From contig CM074804.1 of the NCBI GenBank assembly GCA_037447605.1, forward strand, positions 7,603,909-7,667,908: a stretch of 64,000 bases of DNA, in the 5' to 3' direction. The notes under the pieces are model-generated. The model was not told where the DNA came from. It saw only the letters and a list, made by a program, of their open reading frames with translations, and searched no databases. Within the stretch, counting starts at the first letter, position 1, and every line of letters starts with the position of its first letter. Both the position numbers and the translations under genes were made by a program. The stretch is from Zygnema circumcarinatum SAG 698-1b (lineage: Eukaryota > Plantae > Zygnematophyceae). Shown piece after piece: positions 2,327-56,903 of this stretch.

Positions 2327-3709
2327 ATGGCTGCCGCGATGGCGCTGCCAGCTGGCGGTCTGGCGGCTCGACGCCATGCGCCACGTGGCAGTGGGAGGGA
2401 CGTTCTTGCAGCTTCGGCGAATGCGTGGAAGCAGCCGGCACGTTGTATGGGGATGTGTGCGGGGAGGGGCGGTGTGCGGTCCAGGTGAATGAGGGAGAGG
2501 GAGAGGGAGAGGGAGAGGGAGAGGGAAAGGCGGCACTTTACAAAGCGCCGCCTTGCTCGAGGGAGGGAGAGCAGAGACGGGGAACGCTATTGGGCAAGCG
2601 CCAGATGGGGGGAGGGGGTGATGAGAGAGGGGAAGGAGGGGAAAGAGCGAGAGTGTGGGGAGAGAAAGGGAGAGAGGGGAGGAAATGCGAGTTGCCGCGT
2701 GTGCCATGATCTGTGGTTTCTCCTTTTTCCTATGACGTTGCTGTCCGCAAACAAGAAAGAAACGTTAGGAAGAGAGAATATCTCAATTCTGCAATACGTG
2801 AGTCAAAGTTGACAAAGGAAATGTTGCAGTCCTTCAATAAGGTTTGATTCTTGACTAGCGAATGCGAGAGAAAAGGTGAGAGAAGGTGTACGAGGCAGAG
2901 GAGAAGCACGAGGAGGGAGAACACAATGTGACAATAGAAAAGTCCTATGCCAACTTTCTTGGATTTTCTCCTCTCCCTTTTTTTTGGCTCCTGTTTTGGG
3001 GCATTTCAGATTTCATGGAATTCAAGCGGCTGTCAAAGCACCGAACGAGCTGGTAGTCAGTGACGAGCACGAGGATTTGAGGAGCGATCTGAAGGATCGT
3101 CTGTACAAAGACTTGGAAAAAACGAGCGGAAATCTTTCCGATACATCTTTAGAGTTGATCGCGTCCTTGGAAAAGCTGAATCCAACGTCCCAACCGGCGC
3201 TGCTTGCTGAAAAGTACCAGGGAGATTTCATAATGCTGAACAGCACCACTCAGGGAGTCCTTTATAAGGGCGCAATCATAACTCTTGGAAGAGCAACGTT
3301 CAACTCCTTTGAGCCCGTCAAGCTGTCTGTGAGGATGGAGGACGTGTACAACTATGTGGGAGGGGAGGGAGAGTCACATTACAACGTGGAGATACACTTC
3401 ACTGTTGCAGAGGAAGGTAAGCCGCCTTTGGAGGGCAAACTGCTTAACAAAGCAGCATGGGAGAGGGCGAGTTCCGACAGACTCAACATCACCTTCTTAA
3501 GCAGCGCTTTGATGCCAAGGAACCCGGAGAAAGAGCTTGAGCAGTGGCTGGAAGTTTTTAAAGATGTGAATACAGGGATGGGAAACGATGGAGTGCTGGA
3601 GAAGCAACTGCCTGCGTACACCGGTTGGCTCGACTTTGTCTATTTGGACGAGGAACTACGGATCACTCGCGGGAATGCTGGGAGCATAGTCATTGTGAAG
3701 AGGCTGTAA
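2327..3709 (+). CDS. Plastid-targeted PAP/fibrillin-domain protein, 2 exons (2327-2484, 3010-3709)
   Basis: Exon 2 has LEKLNPT..P and the C-terminal fibrillin motif GWLDFVYLDEELRITRGNAGS. Exon 1 (MAAAMALPAGGLAARRH...) is Ala/Arg/Gly-rich like a transit peptide. The donor CCAG|GTGAAT and acceptor TTTCAG|A are phase-compatible (AG+A = Arg). Confidence 0.85.
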
Positions 3710-4554: not shown

Positions 4555-7500
4555 TCATTTGCCCCCCACAGTCGCACAACCTTTCCTCGTCCTAAGCTCC
4601 ATCCCTCCCACGCGCCTCCCTCTGCACTCCCGCTTTGCAGGCCTGCCTTCCAATTCGTCTGAGTGCTGACTCTCAGCCTGGCCAGCCTCTGCAGTCCGAA
4701 TCTTCTCAGAATTTCCTTTCAATTCATCTGCCTTCTGACTTTTCCTCGTGGTTTTAGATGATTCGCCAGAGCCACCTGCACCCCCTTGAGCAGAGCTAGT
4801 GGCCCTCCCGATTTTCCGCCCTTGTCTCTGGCATGTACTTCCTGTTCCTTCTACGCCATTGACTGTCAGGAAAGGCAAGCAAAGCACAAAGTCTTCTTCC
4901 TCCTCTGGCGGCACCCGCGCATTGGAAGTACTCAACAGTGATGCAGAAATGTCTAATCCGGCCCCTCCCTGCTCAGCCGACTCAAACGGCAGGTCTGCCA
5001 CCTTCACTTGCTTTGCTCTCTCATCTCCTCTGCAAGGGCCCATGGTCGACTCCGGTCTCTTTCCTTCAACCTGTCTAAGATTCTTTTCTGTGAGCTCATT
5101 TCTGTCAGCCTTCGAAGACCCCCTTCGCTTACTTTCTACTTTATTGTCTGCAAAGCGCTGCGGTCTTTTTCTCTCTCTTGCTCCACTTCTTGCTCGCATT
5201 GCAGGGCAGTCATCTAGAATCGCATCCGCTGCCTTTGACAAGTTCCTCTTCAAACAAGCAGGCTCCCCCCCAACATGAGATTGGCTTCCAGACATCATTG
5301 TGATTTGAACCGCTTGAGCCTTCTCCACCTCAATCTCTCCAGTTTCGCCCTTCTCCAGTTGCTTCACCTCTGCAAGACCTTGTTCAGCATACCCCTGGTC
5401 ACAAGATGTCATGCAACCAGTTGGTTTGACTGACGCAGCAACATTTGACTCAACTTTTCGGTTATGTGACCTTCTTCCATAAACTCTCATAACTGGAATC
5501 TCAACCTCACCCCCAGGCAGAGCAGTTGGACTCAAGTTTTCAGCAGCGTTGTTGTTGGAGGTCCACGAACACAGAGACCCCGGATCACACTCTTGAAGAG
5601 ATGTCAGTTCTTGCTCAGACTTCTTCGTAGTTCGTGACAAACCTGACATGGTTTCAGATCCAAGAATATCCGGCAGGCATGGATGGTCTTCTAATTTTCT
5701 CTCAAATCCTGAAGACGGATTCAATGACTGGGCCTCTTCACCGTACTCCACCAATCTGTTGGCGGATAAAGTATTCAGCTCAACTGCTTGCTCAGATGAA
5801 TTGACCAACTGACGGAGGTCTCCACGATGCTCGTCTTCGCCTCCCAACTTCCAGTTTGGTGCAATCCCTTCATTACCCCCTTCATCCATCCCGTTGCCAC
5901 AATTAACCCCATTGAGCTTGTTACCTTCCACCGTGTTCCCCCAATTCAGCGCAGTCCCTCCCTGTACCGTTCTCCAGCTCTCAAGTCCAACGCTAACTAT
6001 AACAGTATTCACGCTCTCAGCGGCATCACCACCTTCTGCAATTGTTAGAGCTTTGAATGCACTTCCATCTCCACTCCTGCTCTCAGCTGCGTTGCCACCT
6101 TCTGCAATAGCTATAACCATGTCTCTAGCTTCATTCCCATCTCCTCTCATGTTCCCGCTGACTGGTGCATCTCCACCCTCTACCTCATTCCTGCTCTCAA
6201 GTGCATGTCCTCCTTCTACCATATACCTGCTCTCTGGTGCACCGTCAGATTCTAACAAATTCACACGTTCAGGTGGACTCCCGCCCTCTACGGTAGTCCC
6301 ACTCTCAGGTGCAGCCCCACCTCCTATTGTGTTCGCACTCTCGGACGCACTCCCATCACATATCATGTTCTCATTTTCAAGTATACTTCCACCTTCTATC
6401 AGAAACCCACTCTTTAGTGCCCCGCCATCTTTAACCGTATTATTGCTCTGGGGAACATTCCGACTTTCAATGATGTTTCGGCTCTCTAATCCAGCCACAA
6501 CTTCTACACTGTTTCCGTTCCCTACTGCGATCCCATCTTGCATTGCATTTCCGCTCCCAAATTCTCTCTCACGTTCGATAGTCGCTTGCTTGGGTGCGAT
6601 CCCATCATCAATAGTGTTTCTGTCCGCAAGTGATACCCTGACTTCTAAGCCATTCCCATGCTCAGATGCACTCCCACCTATCAAATTCGTTCTCTTGGGC
6701 ACACCGCGGCATTCAACCACGTCCATGACTTCCGGTGCAGTCCCACCTCCTGCAGAATTCCAGCTATCAGGTGCACAAATACCTGCGGTAGTCGCAATCT
6801 CAGGTACAATTCCACCTTCTACCGTATCCCCACCTTCAAGAGCCCTCCCATCTTCACCTGAATGCCTGATCTCTGGTGCACTTGTGCCCCCAATCGTAGT
6901 ACCACTATCCAAAGGGAATCTACAGGTCTCCTCCTGGATGTCCCCCAAATTGCAAGCTTCACCTTCTAAGCCACTGTCAGACACAGCTGTGGACGGATAC
7001 ACCCAGGTCACGACTACACCAGTGTCAACAGCACCCTTGACAACACTCTGAGTTGAAGAATCGGCAGATTGAAAACTTCCAGGTGCATGAAACACTTTTG
7101 CAAAAGAAAACCTGTTCTCCTTCATAGGCTTTCTACCTCCCCAGCCAGGAGCGAAATACGGAATTGCCATACGATCACGAGGAGAGTATTTCATTTCCCC
7201 TTCAATGCCTTCCTCTGCTTCGAAATCTTCAACCTCTTTATTATGCTCCCATCTCTGCCACGTTAGACCTCTAGTACGAGCGCTACCATCCTCCATATCA
7301 AGACTCCAAAACTCCCCTCCCAAACTTCTTAAGTCTCTGCCATTATGTATGAGCAGCTCTGTCTGTGGAAAACTATTTGGCTCTTGCACTATGGTCAATG
7401 CAGATTTCTCGCTCTGAGAAAGTGTGGTTGCCTCCTCCTTTGTTAACACAGATCCCTCACATACAGACATCCTAATAGCATCACTCTCCAAAGTCTTCAA

Positions 7501-10500
7501 CCGTTCTGCCTGCACAACCTCCACTTCAACTCCAGGCCTTCTCAGCTTATCAACAGACAGAAGTGACTGTAGCCACTGCTGCTTTACTGAACCAACATCT
7601 GTGCCCAATGCCTGTGTCTGCCCTAGCACAGTCCTTTCGGGTTGACTTGCCACCTCCATCACTTTTGTTGAAGTCTCCGGACCAGCCTCCAACAGTTCTA
7701 TCCTGGAAATTCTGAACTCTGAACTTTCAGATACGTGCAGTTCAGAAGATTCGCGTTCTGCTGGAGAGTGTTCCTCTACAACTCTCTCCACAGCAACGCA
7801 CTCCACGGCATTGGAGGTCACGCATGGCAACTCCATCGTTCCATTCAGACCCTGATACACCTTCTTTACTGGCAGCAATCTCCCATGGGAGCTCCTACGC
7901 GCATGCCTCCCAGACGATCGCTTGACGCTAAGCCTTTGTGATCTACGAGTGGGTAGCATTTCCCCCGGATCTGGAGGCTTCGGCCTGTATAAACTTCCTA
8001 ATCTACCTCCACCCTTTATCTCAGAAGCCTTGTCCTCCTTCACCCTGGACAAACCGAGCACTTTCCTTGCACCATTGTGTACCGAGGATGGCGTTCCCGA
8101 GGCTGATGCAAAAGAAGGTCCGATCCCAGCCGGCCCCGCCCTTCCCCAGTGCTGCTTTGTTCCAGCTAGTAGGCCATAACCTTCGTCCATTTTCGTCGCA
8201 CACATCTCTCCTGCTTCCAAACCAGAAACCCGTTCTCCACATCCTCCGGAGCTTTGGGTGTTGTAGTTACTGGAGTTAGCTTTGACGCCTTCGCCATATG
8301 CATCACCTCCTTCCAAGCGACAAACATTTAGAATTCTATCAGCTAGGTCGTCTCCAGTACTTCGCCAAAAGCCTAATCCTGCAGAGGGAACAAGTGCAGG
8401 AGTTATAGGCGTGGCTGCAAGCCCCAAAGCCTCCGCTTCATCTTCCAATATTTCCATCACAAGTTCGTGACTTCCTCCGTCTTCTTCTGAAGATATAGCC
8501 CTTCTCGCGATACGTTTCCGGGCTCTGGATGAAGGGCCAGATCCATTACGTCGTTTCGACGACTTGCTGCGACAATTGACTGGAGAACGAGACACACGAT
8601 GGCTAGTTTGTCTATCCAATTTGTCTTCACTTTGCCTTAGATTCCAACTAAGAAGAGGAGAAGGAAAAACAGTGGGCGTAACGGGAATGAATGTATCAGC
8701 AGGCAAGTCCGAACTCAACTGCTCGCCACATTTGACAAAAGGCCGAATTTTCATCAAAATCGATCCACTGGATTTCCAATGCTCAAGCTCATTGTTGTGC
8801 TCGAAGTTATCCCTGCCGGAAGCACTACCGAGCCCCCTAAAAGGCTTGTCTATGAACTCGTCTCCACCGTAGATGCAGAGTTCCCTTTCACCCCTTATGC
8901 TTTTTTCACCGTGATAGTTATTCGCGAGCTCATTCATTCCTGCAGACACCCTTGGTGTCGAAACTGTGACGACGCCATCTCCCCAGCCTAACTCTCTATA
9001 ATCCTGCAGGGGCTCTGTGACATGGAATCCATCTAACACCTGCCTAGAGCTGTTCTGTTGTCCTTCTGACGAACTGCTGACCGCATGCGAGTATTTTCCA
9101 AGGTTCAGAATGGTAAGATTGTCAGGCGATAATTCTCCAAAGGAACTATCTACATGTCCCCCTTCCTTGTCCATGCCTCTTGAGAATCCACAGCTTTCAA
9201 CAAGCAATGCATAGTCTTCGTATTCAGCAACATTGCTCACCTCCCCTTGCAGATCAGCATCAGAATTGCTGATCTCAGTGTCTGCCTGCACAGCCTCCTT
9301 CCACCAATTATCACCCAAGTCCTCTTCACACTTCTGCGTCATCTGCATGCTGTGAGTAGTCCTTCCATTGGTTAAACCAGCTGGTTGCTGCAAACATGCT
9401 CCTGTTATTGGTGCAGCATGACCTTCCAAATGCCCAGATTCCTCCTCTCCTCCCTCAACAGAAACTCCATCCAAAAGAGGGCACATGCCCATGTCCACCT
9501 TCTTCCAGTCCAAAAGCCCTTCGTCTGTTGAGCTTGCCCACCAGTCAGGCTCATGGCTCAGCGAGCAAGGAGAACCTGCCTCCTGATCGAGTACACAACT
9601 AGAGTTGTTCCCATCAACTAGCCCCGAGTGGACAGGCAAACCATCTACAGGCAGCGTGCTCGCCTCCTCCCCCCCCATTCTCATCAAATGTTCTGAGACG
9701 AACTGTTCATCATCTTCCATAGGCCCCAGCCCTTCTGTATCATCTGCAATTGCTCCAAAACCAGTCAGCCGGGTCCCGTCTTCATCACTGCTAGGCAGTG
9801 ATTTGTGCATATTCCTCAATTCCAGCTCACCGACACAAGACGTTTCTTGCCCCTCATTCTCCTGCCCGCCTGGAATCCAATCCCCGTTGGAATCGCCTTG
9901 ACCTCCAAAAGACGAACCGTCCCTGCTCACTTGGTCAAACGCTTCCCCCAAACACCCCATTCCTTCTCCCATTTGAGGTTCAAGCATAATCAATTCGGAA
10001 TAGCGAGATTGCAAGGGCGTGCCAGAGTTGTCAACATCGACTACAATACAAGAGTCTTGCAACCCCAGTGGTCCTTCGCTATCTCCTCTACGTTCAAGCT
10101 CCAAGCAATCACCACTGAGAAGACCTTCAGCGCTAGTTGGCTTCCTCCCCATAAGAATCGAGTCATCGAGCTTATCCTGAGTTTCAGCTCCTGGACACCC
10201 TTCCCATGCCTGCACTCCCTGAAAGATCCTCCGGTTCCCCTGCCCGAAAATTTGCAATTCGCAACCACTATCACCCCTACACATTGATGCATGGAAATAC
10301 TTTCCGTCAACGAGGTCACCTCTAGGACCTACCTCTCTTGATCCTTGAAAGCCAGCCTGGAGTTCCTTTCTAACACTCAAATGATCTTCTTTACCAAGTG
10401 CTTCCACACAACTTCCATTGGACAATTCATTTCCGTCATCTTCCACGCGCTCCTTCCTGGCCAACTTCACATCTCCATACTTAGATTCACCGTCTGAAAC

Positions 10501-10674
10501 ATCTGCAGCCTCTTTGCAGCCTCTACTACTCGCATGAACCTCCTCCTTCAAGATTGGACGACGCAGCCCCATGTTCTCTGTGATTTCTCCACGACTTGAG
10601 ATGACATTACTTGAAACTTCTGCTCTGTCAGTTAAGCCGTAATTCCCGCAAGTGAAGCTGCTTGTAGACTCCAA
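4555..10674 (-). CDS. Very large (>=2039 codon) uninterrupted exon encoding an acidic, Ser/Gly/Glu-rich, probably disordered protein of unknown function; true start or upstream exon unresolved
   Basis: 6.1-kb stop-free frame (open back to a TGA at 10708-10710), with candidate splice acceptors near 10690-10705 and no recognisable globular domain. Contains a degenerate 12-residue repeat and basic NLS-like patches. Confidence 0.75.
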   Translation of the reverse strand: MESTSSFTCGNYGLTDRAEVSSNVISSRGEITENMGLRRPILKEEVHASSRGCKEAADVSDGESKYGDVKLARKERVEDDGNELSNGSCVEALGKEDHLSVRKELQAGFQGSREVGPRGDLVDGKYFHASMCRGDSGCELQIFGQGNRRIFQGVQAWEGCPGAETQDKLDDSILMGRKPTSAEGLLSGDCLELERRGDSEGPLGLQDSCIVVDVDNSGTPLQSRYSELIMLEPQMGEGMGCLGEAFDQVSRDGSSFGGQGDSNGDWIPGGQENEGQETSCVGELELRNMHKSLPSSDEDGTRLTGFGAIADDTEGLGPMEDDEQFVSEHLMRMGGEEASTLPVDGLPVHSGLVDGNNSSCVLDQEAGSPCSLSHEPDWWASSTDEGLLDWKKVDMGMCPLLDGVSVEGGEEESGHLEGHAAPITGACLQQPAGLTNGRTTHSMQMTQKCEEDLGDNWWKEAVQADTEISNSDADLQGEVSNVAEYEDYALLVESCGFSRGMDKEGGHVDSSFGELSPDNLTILNLGKYSHAVSSSSEGQQNSSRQVLDGFHVTEPLQDYRELGWGDGVVTVSTPRVSAGMNELANNYHGEKSIRGERELCIYGGDEFIDKPFRGLGSASGRDNFEHNNELEHWKSSGSILMKIRPFVKCGEQLSSDLPADTFIPVTPTVFPSPLLSWNLRQSEDKLDRQTSHRVSRSPVNCRSKSSKRRNGSGPSSRARKRIARRAISSEEDGGSHELVMEILEDEAEALGLAATPITPALVPSAGLGFWRSTGDDLADRILNVCRLEGGDAYGEGVKANSSNYNTQSSGGCGERVSGLEAGEMCATKMDEGYGLLAGTKQHWGRAGPAGIGPSFASASGTPSSVHNGARKVLGLSRVKEDKASEIKGGGRLGSLYRPKPPDPGEMLPTRRSQRLSVKRSSGRHARRSSHGRLLPVKKVYQGLNGTMELPCVTSNAVECVAVERVVEEHSPAERESSELHVSESSEFRISRIELLEAGPETSTKVMEVASQPERTVLGQTQALGTDVGSVKQQWLQSLLSVDKLRRPGVEVEVVQAERLKTLESDAIRMSVCEGSVLTKEEATTLSQSEKSALTIVQEPNSFPQTELLIHNGRDLRSLGGEFWSLDMEDGSARTRGLTWQRWEHNKEVEDFEAEEGIEGEMKYSPRDRMAIPYFAPGWGGRKPMKENRFSFAKVFHAPGSFQSADSSTQSVVKGAVDTGVVVTWVYPSTAVSDSGLEGEACNLGDIQEETCRFPLDSGTTIGGTSAPEIRHSGEDGRALEGGDTVEGGIVPEIATTAGICAPDSWNSAGGGTAPEVMDVVECRGVPKRTNLIGGSASEHGNGLEVRVSLADRNTIDDGIAPKQATIEREREFGSGNAMQDGIAVGNGNSVEVVAGLESRNIIESRNVPQSNNTVKDGGALKSGFLIEGGSILENENMICDGSASESANTIGGGAAPESGTTVEGGSPPERVNLLESDGAPESRYMVEGGHALESRNEVEGGDAPVSGNMRGDGNEARDMVIAIAEGGNAAESRSGDGSAFKALTIAEGGDAAESVNTVIVSVGLESWRTVQGGTALNWGNTVEGNKLNGVNCGNGMDEGGNEGIAPNWKLGGEDEHRGDLRQLVNSSEQAVELNTLSANRLVEYGEEAQSLNPSSGFERKLEDHPCLPDILGSETMSGLSRTTKKSEQELTSLQECDPGSLCSWTSNNNAAENLSPTALPGGEVEIPVMRVYGRRSHNRKVESNVAASVKPTGCMTSCDQGYAEQGLAEVKQLEKGETGEIEVEKAQAVQITMMSGSQSHVGGEPACLKRNLSKAADAILDDCPAMRARSGARERKRPQRFADNKVESKRRGSSKADRNELTEKNLRQVEGKRPESTMGPCRGDERAKQVKVADLPFESAEQGGAGLDISASLLSTSNARVPPEEEEDFVLCLPFLTVNGVEGTGSTCQRQGRKIGRATSSAQGGAGGSGESSKTTRKSQKADELKGNSEKIRTAEAGQAESQHSDELEGRPAKRECRGRRVGGMELRTRKGCATVGGK

Positions 10675-26052: not shown

Positions 26053-28771
26053 TCATACAGTGGACGAAGACAGTGCGGTCTTACTTGTCCACAATGGGCC
26101 ATTGATTCCATCTCCAAAACCTTTCAGATGCCCAGATTCCAATACGAGTGCGCTGTGGTACCAACCTGTACTCACTTGAACCACCTTGCCGCTCAAATAT
26201 TCATCCGGTATCTGCTTAGGCTCCATGACTTTAACGAGGGAAGTTCCAAGGCCGAGGGCGCCCGTGCCGCCCCAGCCGCTCCCATACACTTTGCCACTAG
26301 CCGTAAGAAATAGAGACTTGCGCTTTTTCATGCTTACCTGCAGACGGAAACCTGATACGGATCAACCAGCAAATACTGTGATGACAAACATCAGCACGGT
26401 ATCGAGAAATCCAAAAGATCCTAGAGTGCACCAATAGTGAGAGCATGATGATGCGCTTGGCATAGGTTCAGGGAGAGGGAGAGAAGAGGGAGAGAAAAAG
26501 ATCCAGGAGAGAGTCCCCTGGGAGGTGGGAGGTGGGAAGAAGGTACAGTTAATTGATGAAGGCTGAAAACTGCACCTGCACAATGAGTTCGTGCTTCAAT
26601 CCCTTAACCACCTTCGGACACGTTACCAGGTCTTCATGTCCGTGCCCGAGAGCGCCACAGTAGTTGTCGCCCCATGTATAAACCTAAAATCCTCAATGCA
26701 GACTAAAAAACGTGTCAACCTCTCCCAGACTTAGAGGCGGAACTATCTCCGTAATGAAGAAGGAGCTCTCGCATGATAATATTGGATCAAGGAACACAAT
26801 CTCAGATATGCAGGATCCACCACTCATCTCAAGACTGACCACTGACTCTGCTTCCTTTCCAACGAAAATTGACTGGAATATGAAAGAAGTCCTCACCTGA
26901 CCTAAGGTGTCAATAACTGCAGAATTCTCGTCCCCAGCAGCAACAGCCACCAAACGCAACTCAGACATGAGAAAGCTCATAATCTTGCGAGGCTCAAGCT
27001 CATTCCGAGGTACATTCTCAGGTGAAGGAAAGACAGGTCCATGGCCGAGCTGATTCCTATAACCGCAACCAAAAGAGTACGCTGTGCCTGCCTCTGCAAG
27101 AAGGAGATTGTGACTTCTGCCAGCGGCGACCTGCAGAACTGGTTCAGTTTCAAGACCAGTTACAGGCCCTGGAGTTGCCTGATTTTCCTCACTTCCATTT
27201 CCCAATCGGCCGCCAATGCCAGCGCCCCATGTATAGACCCGACCAGAGACTGTGAGGGCAATTGTATGTTTGTCGCCAGCTGATACCTGATCAAAATCAG
27301 ACAGCAGAGGGGCTGCGAGTAAATCGCATGAAACAGGAAAGCAGCATGATCTAAATTGTCCGACTTGGGCTCGAAACAAAGCCAAGAAGCGTCGAGCGAA
27401 CATTCCACTTGCCTGCTTGCATGGTATTCCTATGAGCCCTTCCACGATTTTGGGCTGGATAATGCACGTATTTGCCAAAGCCTGGCCGTGACCACAGCAG
27501 CCATCTATGTCGTCGCCAAATGTATAAACCTGCGATCATCCAATAGCATTCATTCATCGCTGCATCCTTGAGCCCCTGCAAACTAGGATGGCCAATAAAG
27601 GAACGCACAGATAGATGAATGCTAGCAACTGTTTTAAGTGTTTGTGAGAGAAAGAGAGAAGAAAGGAGAGAAAGAAAGTGAGAAAGAGGGATAGGGAATG
27701 AGAGGAGAAGGAAGCGGGAGAAAGAAAGGGAGAGGGGAAGAGGGCTGAGGGGGTGAATTTCAGACTTCAAGTGTACCTGCATACTGCAGTCCAAGACAGC
27801 AACGTGTGATCTGCCAGCAGCTACGCTAGCTACACGAGTGCCTCCAAAGCAAGCTGTTGGTGCGTATATGTGAAAGGTACTTGGCTCGGTCTCTAGAGGA
27901 GGGCTCTCCTCCCAGCGCAAGCCTTGGACCAGGAGAGACCCCTCTGCATTGACAAGCAGCGTCTGGTTACGGGCAGCTACAACCTGCCATAGCAGAAAGC
28001 ATGCGATAGTAATTCGTGAGCATCATTTAATTTTTGGCTCAGGCTTTGCTAATTGTACGAATGTATATGATTCGATCATATCGATACAGTAGTCTTCATC
28101 TCCGGGTCAAATACAAGTGTAAGAGAACAGATCACTAGAACGCTAGCACACCTACAGAAGATACCACTACCCCTACAAATTAAAAACTCGGGATACAAGA
28201 CATTGGTTTCTGAGAATTCTGCCAAACATTCTGCCTCGTACGCATTTTAATAGGATATTCCGAGCAACTATAAAAGTTGACGCGTCACATCGCCTTTTGC
28301 TTGTTAAGAGCAACGTTGCAAACCATTTGCAATGCTCTTTTCTTTTTTCGTCATTTGTTAACCGCGGTTTTTGCGAGCATGGCATCGCTCTATTCATTAT
28401 CTTTTAAAGCTCCAACGAAGACACTGTTTGTCATTTGCAAGCGAGCAGCTCACCTGAGGAAAGTGCTGCTTCTGCCCTCTTCCCTGCTCCACGAGTTCAA
28501 TAAAGTTTAAAACGCGGGCCCATCGCGAGCCGCAGCGCTTCAGCAACTCCATCCAATTGTCTCCGCACATCCGCCACGGTCCTCCTCTTGCGCGGCTGCG
28601 CTTGTGAGCTGTATTCTCCAGGAGCGACGCTCTTCTGTTAGGCAGCTGATTGCAGGGCGACCTGAAATGAAAGCAAGTAGCTTCCAAGCTTGCAAGGTCT
28701 CTGGCCGCCAGGTCTGCCGATTCCAGCACATACCGAAGCAATTCCTGCGGCAAATCATCAAAGCTGCTCAT
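26053..28771 (-). CDS. RCC1/UVR8-repeat beta-propeller protein with F-box-like N-terminus (resembles the At3g15430 family)
   Basis: N-terminus FDDLPQELLRYVL; RCC1 repeats VAAGRSH, VSAGDKHT..VYTWG, VSTGWYHS..GFGD; ATG at 28769-28771 and TGA at 26053-26055; one intron uses a GC donor. Confidence 0.88.
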
Positions 28772-51766: not shown

Positions 51767-53728
51767 ATGGTTGAGAAGGGGAAGCCCAGGAAGGACGAGG
51801 TTGTGACCAGGGAGTACACTGTGAACCTCCACAAACGCCTGCATGGAGTGTATGTCTCTCTCGAACTCTGTCGCCCCCTTTTCCTTGTTCTCTCTCTCTC
51901 TCTCTCTCTCCCTCTCTCTCTTTCTCTCCCTCTCTCTCTTTCTGCGGGTTTGTGTCTTATTGGAGGATAGGTTGGGATGGCTGGCGGGTAAAATGTAGAA
52001 CGTTTAGGGTTAGGAAAGCGAGGGTAAGCCATGCGGATTACAGGATTTAGGTTCGTTTGATTTTAGGGTACTTGGACAGAGGCAGTCTTGCAGCAGGGCA
52101 GTGAGAGGCCGCACGTGTTGGAGTGTGGAACGTACGGTGGAAGAAGGATGCTGGGCAGCAGTTCAGTCATAGTTTGAGAGTCCGCTTGATGGTCCGTTTT
52201 GGCAATAAGAGCATTAGAATTAGAAACTATACCCAGAATTACTGGGAAAATTAGGGCAGATGCATTGCTCATGTATCGGTCAAGAGTACATTACGAAGGG
52301 GGCAGAGTCAGGGAGGCTTACATTTGAGAGTAGGACATGTTTTAGGGTTAGGGTTAGGGCGAGAAGGTGACGATCAAGGCAGGGACGGCGAGTGCGACCG
52401 TGGGGCTATCTATTTCAAGCCCCACTAATTGCCCCGCTTTGTTCGACAACCCCATTGTACTGGTGCATTTCAGCAGCTGCATTTTGGCCGGTGCACTTTT
52501 TCCTTTCATTTTCGAATGCCAAAGGCTGAGAGGGTCTAAACATGGATTGCCTTTCTTAAGGCCTCTGCTTGACTGCCAAATAGGTTTTTGTACCGTCGCC
52601 CAATATGAGCGCAGGAGTACTGAGCTACCTCGGTGATCCTTTGTGATCCTCTTGAGTCCATTGTGATACTACGGTTGGATCAATTTGAGTCGTTCGATTC
52701 ACTTAGGCCTTGAAACATTACTGCTTGGAGTTTTCATAATTGATAAGTGGAGTATGCGATATAGAGGTGGGCAAGAGTCGAGGAAGGTAGAGTAGATAGA
52801 ATAGAGTAGATTGATTTATTTGAAATTTCTCCCTCATTCTCTCTCTCGCTCTCCCTCTCCCTGTATCGTGCACGGGTAATTGGCGCTCTCCGAAAATGAA
52901 AAACTTGAAAGGTTGAACTTCTCGTTAGGAATTGAAAAGATAGGGGTGTGATAGGTGATACCTTTTTTGTGATGCCCCTTTTTTTTTACCTTTTGTTTAT
53001 CTTGTCAAACCTTGTTCAGCTCTACAAGAAATAGAGTTGTCACTTCTTTCAGTTGGGTACAACGAAGCTGCTGTAAGAATTTGGAGCCCCTTTGGGTGGA
53101 ATCACTTGCCCGTTAGCACTTCCATCTATTCAAAATTTCACGTATAGCATTGACATATGAAGCGGAAAGACGAGCATGAGGTCAGCTTTTGACAGTGTGG
53201 TCTAGCAGAACTTCTTTCTCTTCGTAGCTCACGATGAGCATGTCAGTTTTTGGGTGTTATTGGACTCTTTCTGACGTCATGGGTCAAAATTTGACTGATT
53301 CTTAAGCGTGGCCAGTAGTCATGAGATGCCCCTTCAATTTCAATTTCGAGCAATTCCACTCGAAGCCTCTGGGCTTGCACGTTTGCCATCGTTGCTTAAT
53401 GTTCAGCCAACTGACACGAGATGGACATGATGGTGGCTCTGATTGCAGCACCTTCAAGAAGATGGCACCCAAGGCAGTGAAGGAGATCCGCAAGTTCGCT
53501 CAGAAGGCCATGGGAACCTCTGATGTGAGGCTAGATGTGAAGCTGAACAAGCACTTGTGGAGTCGTGGTGTGCGGAATGTCCCCACTCGCGTCCGCATCC
53601 GCATTGCGCGGAAGCGTAACGATGATGAGGATGCCAAGGAAGAGCTTTACAGCTATGTTACCGTGGCAGAGGTTCCTCCAGAGGGGCTCACCGGGTTGGG
53701 CACAAAGATTGTAGAGGATGAAGAGTAA
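51767..53728 (+). CDS. RPL31: 60S ribosomal protein L31, 2 exons (51767-51849, 53449-53728)
   Basis: [27 protein letters not shown]|[18 protein letters not shown]...[31 protein letters not shown]. Confidence 0.97.
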
Positions 53729-54405: not shown

Positions 54406-56903
54406 CTACAGCGCAGCCCTTGCAGCGCGAGCCTCTGCCAGGAGGCAGAGCTGCTCAAAGAGCATGTTGGCTGCCACGCGCGGCGTGTTGCCTGTGGGGT
54501 CCCAAAGGGGGGACGTGCATACAAAGTCGGCGCCAATGAGGTTGAGACCTCGGAGGCCTCTCAGAAGCAGCTGCGCTTCAAGAGTGGTCAGACCGCCATC
54601 CTGCTTGCCCTCACTCACAAGGAGGCTTTGGTGAGTAAGGATATGCGGTTCATCGACCCTAGAGGGACCAAAGATGCAAATTTGGAAAAGGTCTCAACTG
54701 ACTTCTGAACGAATGGACAATCAAATTAGGGCAGGTACAAGGCATGAGAAGAGTGGGCTTTCTGCTGACCTCAGGCGAACCGGTTCCGATGGCAAAGGCT
54801 GGGTCGAGTGCATCAACATCAAACGTGATGTATGTTGGCCCATCTCCAACGACCTTAAGAATAGAAGGATAAGAGCCCACATAAGCACCTTCATGCAGCT
54901 TGCGGCAGTGCAGCTTGCAGCATCCTCCCCCCAAGAATAATGTATTGAACACCTTAAGTGTTTAACTTTGGGCGCACTCGTTCATACCTCACGAGCGATC
55001 TGTGCGACCTTGCGCGGCCCAAGATCATAAAACTCCTCCATGGGAACTACTCTCATTCCCCACTCTTCACTCCACATCTTGGCGGAGGATACAGTCCCCC
55101 TGATGCCGATCTGAATCGTTCTTTTCGGGTCAAGCAGCCCTTCCTCCACAGCATTGCTAAACGGAGTGCCGTTCCAATACTGCACCAAAGAACCTTCCAC
55201 GAAATTGATCTTTCAATCATCATACAACGGGGGACTCCCAAAGTAAACTCATTGCTCGTAAACTTTTGCCTTAATTGACAAACTCAAGCAGAAAGGTAAA
55301 AACCACATTAGAAAACTGGAGCAAGGAGACGAACTTGTAGTTGCATTCCTTGCTGGCCGATCTAATAAAGGGTTCTGGGACAAACCGTCTGCGTTGCCCG
55401 GAATCTGAGGTCACCTTAGAACCCATACTGCTTTCGGATTCCGCTGTGTCTGACGTGTCCATGTGGGCGTCCAGGTGGACCATTCCCACAGGGCCAAGCT
55501 GGCGTGCTATTGCTCGCAAGATGGGGAGAGTGATGCTGTGGTCCCCTCCCGCTGTGAGAGGAGTCACTCCTGCCTCACATATCGGAAGATAGAACTCCTC
55601 GATCTCCTTCAGCGCACTCTCCACACCTGACCATGGTCGAGACAACACAACGTCTCCCACTGGAGGCGCTCTCTCCCACCCCACCTCTTACAAAGTCAAC
55701 CGGAATTGAAATGTCGCCATAGAAACTGTAGCCTAGTCGTGGCAATGATGGCTTTCATGGGTCATGGGTCACGGTCATGATGGTCACTATATGCAGGCCC
55801 TTCAGTAAAGAGAAACTTGAAAAAGCAGATCAACGAGAATAAATGCAGTGCTGTAGAGGAGCTTGGGGTTCTCAAAACATAAGGACAGTACAAAACAAAA
55901 GAAGCTGTCTGTGCATACCATCGGCGACGCGGCATAAACTGAAAGGAGAGATGCCGGTGGAGCCATGGATCTTGCGGAGCATGCTTGACTTGTTTCTGAT
56001 TTCCCGCGGACCCAATCTTGTGCCGGGATGGCTGGCACCGCCGTCAAATGGGACCCCAACAAGGGCGATATCTAGCTGCAAATTTGAAAAATTGTCCCAA
56101 CAACCCTGGTCAGACAAAGATTTCACTCTAAAAGGCATTAGCTTGCGGGGATTTCCTAGGAGTTTTTACAATCTTTTGAGTCTTCGAAATTTTCAATGCG
56201 TTCATTCTGCAGGGGCGTTACAACTTATTTTTTGAGAGACTTGAGCTTCGCAAGGGTCTGCATAGTTGCAGGGCTTCCAGAGTAAGCGAAATCCCATGGC
56301 GTTCGGAGTTCAGCAAATTAGGGAGCTTCAATTCAAAAACCAGAACCGGCTTGAACCAAACGAACCCAAAAGGTGCGTACGATAAAAACTTTTTAGAAAA
56401 ACAAAAAGAACTTGTCGAAAGTCTTCGAGCTCAGCAGTCCCGTACTGCACTCTCAGCGATCATACCAAGAATGATGAAAATCCTAAAAAAAATTCAGTCT
56501 CCAAATGCTAATAAGCCCCAAAAACGTGAAAACGCAGACCCTAACCCTAATACCGGATAATACCGACCTCGCTGATGCTGGTAGCCAACGGTGCCCGCAG
56601 GAGTGTCGGAAGTCCTGAGTACTTGGGCACGCCATGCTGCACAGGGTGCTGCCAGCGCTTCAGCTGCGCATCCATGGCTTCTGTCAAGGGGGCGGAAGAG
56701 GAGGAGGAGGGGGAGGAAGAAAAGGAGGAGGAGAGGGATGGGGAAGGACGGGAAAATGGGGGAGTGAACTGGGGGGAAGAGCATGGCGGGGGCGGGGGCG
56801 GGGGCGGGGACGACGCCCAGGGGCCTCCCTTAAGTCGCCAGCCTGCACGTGCAGCACGCAGAAGCGTCCCCATGGCTTCGCCACGTGGCGCCATGGGAGG
56901 CAT
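54406..56903 (-). CDS. Ureohydrolase (agmatinase / guanidino-acid hydrolase-like) with organellar targeting extension, 6 exons; start may be 56903, 56894 or 56873
   Basis: LDIALVGVPFDGG, GPREIR, GGDHSIT, HLDAHMD, GLLDPKRTIQIGIRG, TFDVDALDPAFA.GTG.PE.GGLT; Arg/Ser/Pro-rich N-terminal presequence; GT-AG introns in phase. Confidence 0.92.

Follow-up and report, generated by a model that had tools for sequence, protein, structure and literature searches.

Can a protein of the arginase family keep its metal site, lose its catalytic histidine and guanidinium-binding glutamate, and still be a working enzyme? The question is raised by a gene of Zygnema circumcarinatum SAG 698-1b (Zygnematophyceae), located on the minus strand of a 64,000-nucleotide stretch of contig CM074804.1 in assembly GCA_037447605.1 (positions 7,603,909 to 7,667,908 of the forward strand). 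This whole stretch is hereafter called the window. The gene encodes a ureohydrolase with asparagine at the histidine site and cysteine at the glutamate site. We find that all six metal ligands are intact, that the gene is expressed and spliced, and that the replacements are fixed in a clade whose members apparently all belong to the green lineage. The protein is probably a working hydrolase whose substrate would differ from the classical guanidino acids.

Active-site residues and gene structure

An earlier note, made from the letters of this DNA, had reported the motifs GGDH, DAHMD and DVD together with YWNGTPF (asparagine codon AAC) and DFVCTSP (cysteine codon TGC). All five are present on the minus strand as described. 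The span then assigned to the finding, 54490-55180, holds the YWNGTPF side and the DFVCTSP motif; GGDH and DAHMD lie outside it, in the exon at 55415-55659. The gene consists of the following features.

54406..56903, minus strand: ureohydrolase coding sequence, six exons, 402 amino acids with the stop codon included (splice joints in RNA contigs, runs X1-X4)
56568..56903, minus strand: exon 1, with an 89-residue Pro/Ser-rich N-terminal extension (MPPMAPRG...) and the start of the catalytic domain, HGVPKYSGLPTLLRAPLATSISE (joint 56568/56075, runs X1-X3)
55919..56075, minus strand: exon 2, LDIALVGVPFDGGASHPGTRLGPREIRNK...CRVAD (Pfam Arginase match; joints 56075/56568 and 55919/55659)
55415..55659, minus strand: exon 3, with GGDH (His205), DAHMD (Asp228, His230, Asp232) and the lengthened loop TSDTAESESSMGSK that holds Glu238 (55441-55439)
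54988..55179, minus strand: exon 4, which starts with YWNGTPF; Asn249 (AAC, 55173-55171) is at the position of arginase His141 and SpeB His163 (alignment to GpuA, PAH and GbuA; joint 55415/55179)
54770..54853, minus strand: exon 5, VVGDGPTYITFDVDALDPAFAIGTGSPE, with metal ligands Asp322 and Asp324 and with Ser336 (54778-54776) at the Thr246/T244 position
54406..54600, minus strand: exon 6, DGGLTT...GADFVCTSP..., with Asp339, Asp363, Phe364, Cys366, Arg379 and the stop codon (joint 54770/54600; alignment to GpuA, GbuA and agmatinases)

Once spliced, the reading frame is open from the ATG at 56903 to the stop codon at 54406. The five introns (56567-56076, 55918-55660, 55414-55180, 54987-54854 and 54769-54601) are all of the GT..AG type. 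Each is confirmed by spliced RNA contigs, which come from four public runs belonging to four studies and match the window with zero mismatches; the earlier note had named cDNA as the check on its reading. Unspliced contigs also occur, at lower depth. A start codon at 56138 (MPFRVKS...) was considered and rejected, because RNA joins 56568 to 56075 and thus leads to an upstream exon with a leader. The catalytic domain begins at HGVPKYSG, after the 89-residue leader.

The metal ligands are complete (His205, Asp228, His230, Asp232, Asp322 and Asp324) and align with the ligand columns in all relatives. On the minus strand, His205 of GGDH is encoded at 55540-55538, the three ligands of DAHMD at 55471-55457, and the two of DVD at 54820-54812. 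The second-shell residue Asp363 is also retained.

Asn249 occupies the column of the catalytic histidine (arginase His141, SpeB His163), and Cys366 (TGC, 54519-54517) occupies that of the guanidinium-binding glutamate (arginase Glu277, SpeB Glu274). In phmmer alignments to solved structures, Asn249 falls under the histidine of GpuA YTHGTPF, and Cys366 falls under the glutamate of ADVVEVSP in GpuA, GbuA and agmatinases. No gaps occur beside either site, so the correspondence to His141 and Glu277 drawn earlier holds. A third contact is changed as well, because the threonine of GTGTPE (arginase Thr246, SpeB Thr244) is Ser336 in this protein. The structure paper on Escherichia coli SpeB names three side chains, H163, E274 and T244, as the proposed contacts of the substrate guanidinium (PMC8049259). 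The corresponding columns here hold Asn249, Cys366 and Ser336; therefore, all three guanidinium contacts are altered. Several other differences go along with these replacements, namely the change of a valine to Phe364, new charges at Asp339 and Arg379, and a loop insertion of 5 residues that carries the nearly invariant Glu238.

The loop, DTSDTAESESSMGSK, is 4-5 residues longer than that of GpuA and of the nearest bacterial relatives. It cannot be explained as intron read-through, because RNA joins 55415 directly to 55179 (...SSMGSK/YWNGTPF), with the splice immediately after MGSK. Thus, the specificity-loop insertion that the earlier note had read from the letters is genuine exon sequence.

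Family placement, relatives and selection

All five long open reading frame (ORF) pieces between 54406 and 56138 match the Pfam Arginase profile PF00491, with 35-68 bits against a cut-off of 22, and the same profile is present in all homologues. The fold was modeled on residues 116-445 of an ortholog, P0151, which is 88.5% identical to the window domain, rather than on the window protein. With a 70-row alignment, AlphaFold produced a model with a mean predicted local distance difference test score (pLDDT) of 90.6 and a predicted template modeling (TM) score of 0.89. The inserted loop is predicted in this model as a short helix with a confidence of around 90. Another model, built from an 8-row alignment, was poor (pLDDT 67) and was set aside. 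By profile, ligands and fold, the ureohydrolase is a member of the arginase superfamily.

The closest solved protein, by both sequence and fold, is the 3-guanidinopropionase GpuA of Pseudomonas aeruginosa (PDB 3NIP/3NIQ; E-value 2e-95, 50% identity). A Foldseek search with the P0151 model ranks GpuA (3NIQ) first, with TM scores of 0.87/0.91; further matches are GbuA, proclavaminate amidinohydrolase, agmatinases, guanidine hydrolases and metformin hydrolases. GpuA shares the six metal ligands and the overall motifs. It differs in having YTHGTPF, GTGTPE and ADVVEVSP where the window protein has YWNGTPF, GTGSPE and ADFVCTSP, and the longer loop of the window protein is acidic. P. aeruginosa GbuA, the second-best solved match, is 43% identical to the ortholog model. 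GbuA falls in the same branch of the family as the window protein, and so does human AGMAT, a mitochondrial guanidino acid hydrolase whose N terminus carries a transit peptide; unlike the window protein, both keep the histidine and the glutamate (His201/Glu320 in AGMAT numbering).

The protein falls in the agmatinase/guanidino-acid-hydrolase branch of the arginase family. It lacks three canonical features of such enzymes: the catalytic histidine, the guanidinium-binding glutamate and the threonine of GTGTPE. P0151 scores below both NCBIfam agmatinase cut-offs (232.7 versus 302 for NF002564, and 146.9 versus 174.3 for TIGR01230). The nearest bacterial relative with His and Glu, P0157, is also just under them (286.1 and 172.9), and the NCBIfam score is therefore a weak discriminator.

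Relatives with the same active site were found in several searches. With exon 3 as the query, a HMMER search against 1.84 billion representatives gave three close matches that cover the loop, one of them the Chlorokybus protein P0003; beyond these, identity falls to about 60%. Two further searches, with the single protein and with a clade profile, covered 5.8 billion proteins; the best 120 matches of each were considered, so that weaker members may be missed. In about 15 clusters among the matches listed, the motifs follow the pattern Y(W/P)N(G/Y)TPF ... GTGSPEDGG ... DFVC(T/C/A)SP. These Asn/Ser/Cys clusters apparently all come from the green lineage. The earlier note had proposed looking for such homologues and for their bacterial gene neighborhoods. 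The homologues exist; no bacterial protein with the Asn/Cys pair is found among the best 120 matches of either search.

Three members are from streptophytes: P0151, which comes from a transcript contig and is 88.5% identical to the window domain; P0152, from a EukProt transcriptome, at 81%; and P0003, at 73%. The last is a protein of Chlorokybus atmophyticus in which YWNGTPF, DFVCTSP and the loop are all as in the window protein. A second group, at 60-64% identity, comes from metagenomes. Its genes sit among eukaryotic genes, such as those for a mitochondrial carrier, P450, Sad1/UNC and plant-type UDP-arabinopyranose mutase, and some hold an unspliced intron within the GG/DH junction. These members therefore come from compact green-algal genomes. 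The fragmentary predictions P0001, P0002 and P0015 leave the frame right after MGSK, which indicates that other genomes have an intron at the same position.

A block consisting of a HAD hydrolase, the ureohydrolase, UDP-arabinopyranose mutase, a mitochondrial carrier and an S51 peptidase is conserved near the algal homologues; we take this arrangement to be inherited. Two green-algal metagenome contigs from different species have a creatininase-family gene (PF02633) at a distance of 1-5 kb from the Asn/Cys ureohydrolase. This proximity is at most a weak lead to a creatine- or creatinine-like substrate. L001 also holds a second arginase-family gene, which adjoins an amidase. The loci concerned are L001 2135-2827 and 14746-17200 and L006 2238-2906.

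The next matches after the clade are proteobacterial proteins annotated as guanidinopropionase/agmatinase, which have both His and Glu and are 56-62% identical. Cysteine at the Glu277 position is not confined to the green lineage. The earlier note knew of no family member with this residue; the uncharacterized bacterial homologues of the P0108 cluster and P0121 carry it, at about 37% identity and in a separate clade. In P0121 and in P0287 of the P0108 cluster (L004 8001-9011), the motif reads DVVCF or DVVCL, and the His region and GTGTPE motif are altered. The neighborhood of these bacterial genes, with a LuxR-type regulator, DUF3500 and an aminotransferase, is uninformative on function. Another candidate, P0141, was rejected as a cysteine variant because the prediction is frameshifted. 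P0070, a distant member of 295 amino acids in the representative library, has Asn at the His site, keeps the Glu (DVAEVCP), and has a loop as long as that of the green-lineage clade.

In a quick maximum-likelihood tree, the Asn/Cys proteins are monophyletic, with a Shimodaira-Hasegawa-like approximate likelihood ratio test (SH-aLRT) value of 100 and a stem of 0.88 changes per site. The clade splits into a streptophyte subgroup and a chlorophyte-like subgroup. This split indicates that the ureohydrolase is old in the green lineage and was not recently transferred into this genome.

Every clade member has the Asn/Ser/Cys pattern. The Asn, Ser and Cys residues and the loop Glu are invariant in an 8-row clade alignment. 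In a wider set of ten aligned clade rows, Glu238 is Glu in nine and Asp in the tenth. The Ser336 column holds Ser in 10 of 10 clade members and Thr in 58 of 58 His/Glu relatives, and Cys366 is invariant in the ten aligned rows and in every member examined. We defined a clade-discriminating column as one that is at least 90% fixed in the clade and differs from the residue held by at least 85% of the 58 His/Glu relatives. Seven columns qualify, six of which (Y247, N249, T251, S336, F364 and C366) are in the three active-site motifs; the seventh is R379. Looser criteria add Asp339 and the loop residue Glu238. Such a pattern marks a burst of active-site remodeling with long conservation after it, and not decay.

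Rates of substitution agree. Compared with transcript L005, its closest relative, the catalytic domain shows 0.084 nonsynonymous substitutions per site (dN), with synonymous sites saturated (synonymous difference, pS, 0.81). The low dN beside a saturated synonymous rate (dS) makes a dead enzyme unlikely, and conservation of the active-site pattern across green algae likewise indicates that the enzyme probably works. The earlier reading of the protein as other than dead is further borne out by expression and splicing of the gene and by retention of the ligands and Asp363.

The leader behaves differently from the catalytic domain, evolving fast relative to L005 (dN 0.50). Ortholog P0151 begins with MAPRG and has a similar, poorly conserved leader. 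The leader is likely organelle-targeting or disordered, and its richness in Arg, Ser and Pro suggests that the ureohydrolase may act in an organelle.

Candidate substrates and alternative readings

Two characterized systems offer partial precedents for such replacements. Metformin hydrolases have Asn at the His site (MetCa N199, MfmA N200) and are active Ni enzymes. Replacing this Asn by Ala abolishes activity in MetCa (N199A) and leaves 5.6% of it in MfmA (N200A); N199H is less active than the wild type (PMC11271267, PMC10927577). MetCa/MfmA (PDB 8SNF, 8X3G, 8RYI) therefore resemble the window protein in having Asn for the non-coordinating catalytic His beside intact metal ligands. However, they keep the Glu (E320/E321), require a ligand-less partner subunit and Ni chaperones, and are only 21-24% identical to the ortholog model. 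The window protein, whose Glu is replaced by Cys, is not a metformin hydrolase. The peptide arginase OspR is active with Ile73 in place of the His and Ser264 in place of the Glu, and a neighboring residue, Glu11, is proposed to take over via a water molecule (PMC10028609). OspR thus has both sites replaced and offers a precedent for a possible role of Glu238. The analogy is one of principle only. OspR is a bacterial maturase of ribosomally made peptides that are modified after translation (RiPPs; landornamide pathway); it acts on peptide arginines and has other replacement residues. The literature that we searched contains no description of an Asn/Cys ureohydrolase variant in algae or plants.

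The best explanation, which we hold to be probable, is that the gene encodes a working two-metal hydrolase with the arginase/ureohydrolase fold. It would represent a subfamily of the green lineage that diverged from bacterial guanidinopropionase-like enzymes and that has an altered head-group cradle and a substrate other than the classical guanidino acids. The machinery that provides the metal hydroxide is unchanged, and a metal-bridged hydroxide would therefore most likely still carry out the attack, presumably on an amidino- or guanidino-type carbon. The cradle for the reactive head group is remodeled from His, Thr and Glu to the smaller or uncharged Asn249, Ser336 and Cys366, with Phe364 alongside. 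As has been proposed for Asn199/200 of metformin hydrolase, Asn249 may stabilize either the transition state or the leaving group through a hydrogen bond. Loop residue Glu238 might supply the carboxylate in place of the lost Glu, as proposed for Glu11 of OspR, or that role might not be needed if the head group of the substrate is substituted or less basic.

A smaller, less charged cradle would be expected to fit a head group other than unsubstituted guanidinium. With the cradle remodeled in this way, 3-guanidinopropionate, 4-guanidinobutyrate and agmatine are probably not the natural substrate, which is more likely another guanidino or amidino compound, perhaps an N-substituted one, from the nitrogen metabolism of algae. 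A new substrate or reaction, as the earlier note had supposed, is plausible for the clade because its fixed changes cluster in the three guanidinium-contact motifs.

Some points weigh against this explanation. OspR shows that replacement of both residues need not alter the kind of group that is hydrolyzed. The fold and NCBIfam tests were made on orthologs (P0151 and P0003), not on the window protein. Furthermore, the eukaryotic neighbor genes say little about function, and proximity to the creatininase-family gene may reflect inherited gene order only. Alternatively, the protein might be an ordinary guanidino-acid or agmatine ureohydrolase of the GpuA/GbuA/AGMAT substrate class, in which Glu238 supplies the carboxylate and neither substrate nor reaction is new. 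Consistent with this possibility, the protein is closest to GpuA in sequence and fold, OspR keeps arginine-to-ornithine activity with Ile, Ser and a relocated Glu, and the loop Glu is present in all but one of the clade rows. However, the three guanidinium contacts changed together along a long stem and then froze, which suggests that specificity has shifted. Canonical members are reported to need both the His and the Glu (PMC9772407), and the orthologs fall under both agmatinase cut-offs, which discriminate weakly. We consider an ordinary hydrolase unlikely, while granting it an appreciable chance.

Two other readings are much less probable. Cys366 might bring new chemistry: it could be a nucleophile, an additional or soft-metal ligand with an effect on metal preference (Ni, Zn or Fe), or an organelle redox switch of enzyme activity. 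The cysteine is invariant in the clade and is often followed by a second one (DFVCCSP in P0152, P0158, P0160, P0290 and P0291), Ni-dependent relatives exist, and an organelle-type leader is present. Yet the six canonical ligands are already complete, and the neighborhood of the bacterial Cys homologues P0108 and P0121 gives no functional clue. We regard it as improbable. The loss of two residues that are held to be catalytically essential in canonical members might suggest a pseudoenzyme with no catalysis of its own, such as a subunit for binding or scaffolding like MetCb/MfmB. Known subunits of this kind lack three to five of the six metal ligands, whereas the window clade keeps all six throughout. 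Moreover, the active-site motifs are under strong purifying selection, and metformin hydrolase shows that a site with Asn in place of His can be catalytically competent. This last reading is about as improbable.

Neighboring transcripts and wider meaning

Other transcripts are detected close to the ureohydrolase gene. In runs X1 and X2, a low-depth transcript from the plus strand joins 56048-56370 to 56599 onward and skips 56371-56598 (GT..AG). This spliced RNA is antisense to ureohydrolase intron 1 and exon 1. RNA contigs also run on upstream past 57100, and they may correspond to the antisense transcript rather than to a long 5' untranslated region. Downstream of the ureohydrolase gene and convergent to it is a plant-type RPL31 exon (53321-53728, plus strand). 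One high-depth RNA contig (53618-54602) links the RPL31 side to the final exon of the ureohydrolase gene; thus, the two genes probably abut or overlap at their 3' ends.

Elsewhere in the window, an uninterrupted ORF of 2039 amino acids (4555-10674, minus strand) is rich in Gly, Ser and Glu and without a match in Pfam; it resembles a giant exon that encodes a largely disordered acidic protein. ORF pieces at 2876-3709 (plus strand) and 26693-27478 (minus strand) match PAP_fibrillin (plastid lipid-associated protein) and RCC1 repeats and are ordinary plant-lineage neighbors. A scan of the largest ORFs in the window, which did not extend to the rest of the genome, reveals no second arginase-family gene.

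Several unexpected activities have come to light recently in the ureohydrolase family, including guanidine hydrolase, metformin hydrolase and peptide arginase, as well as the re-assignment of human AGMAT. Each was recognized through changes in active-site residues that are not metal ligands. The clade described here, in which all three guanidinium contacts are replaced in the same way, the metal site is intact and purifying selection is strong, is a well-defined candidate for another such activity. To our knowledge, guanidino-compound metabolism in algae has barely been charted.

It is possible, though we advance this tentatively and think it rather unlikely, that the reaction of the clade is new for the arginase fold in eukaryotes. 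Such a reaction might hydrolyze a head group that is N-substituted or weakly basic, or it might involve Cys366 directly as a nucleophile, soft-metal ligand or redox switch. With the same reserve, candidate head groups would include a methylated or cyclic guanidine and creatine-like, guanylurea- or biguanide-like, ureido or amidino compounds. If this proposal is true, the enzyme would represent a new step in nitrogen metabolism, one that the common ancestor of green algae and the streptophyte lineage already possessed and that most plants have since lost.

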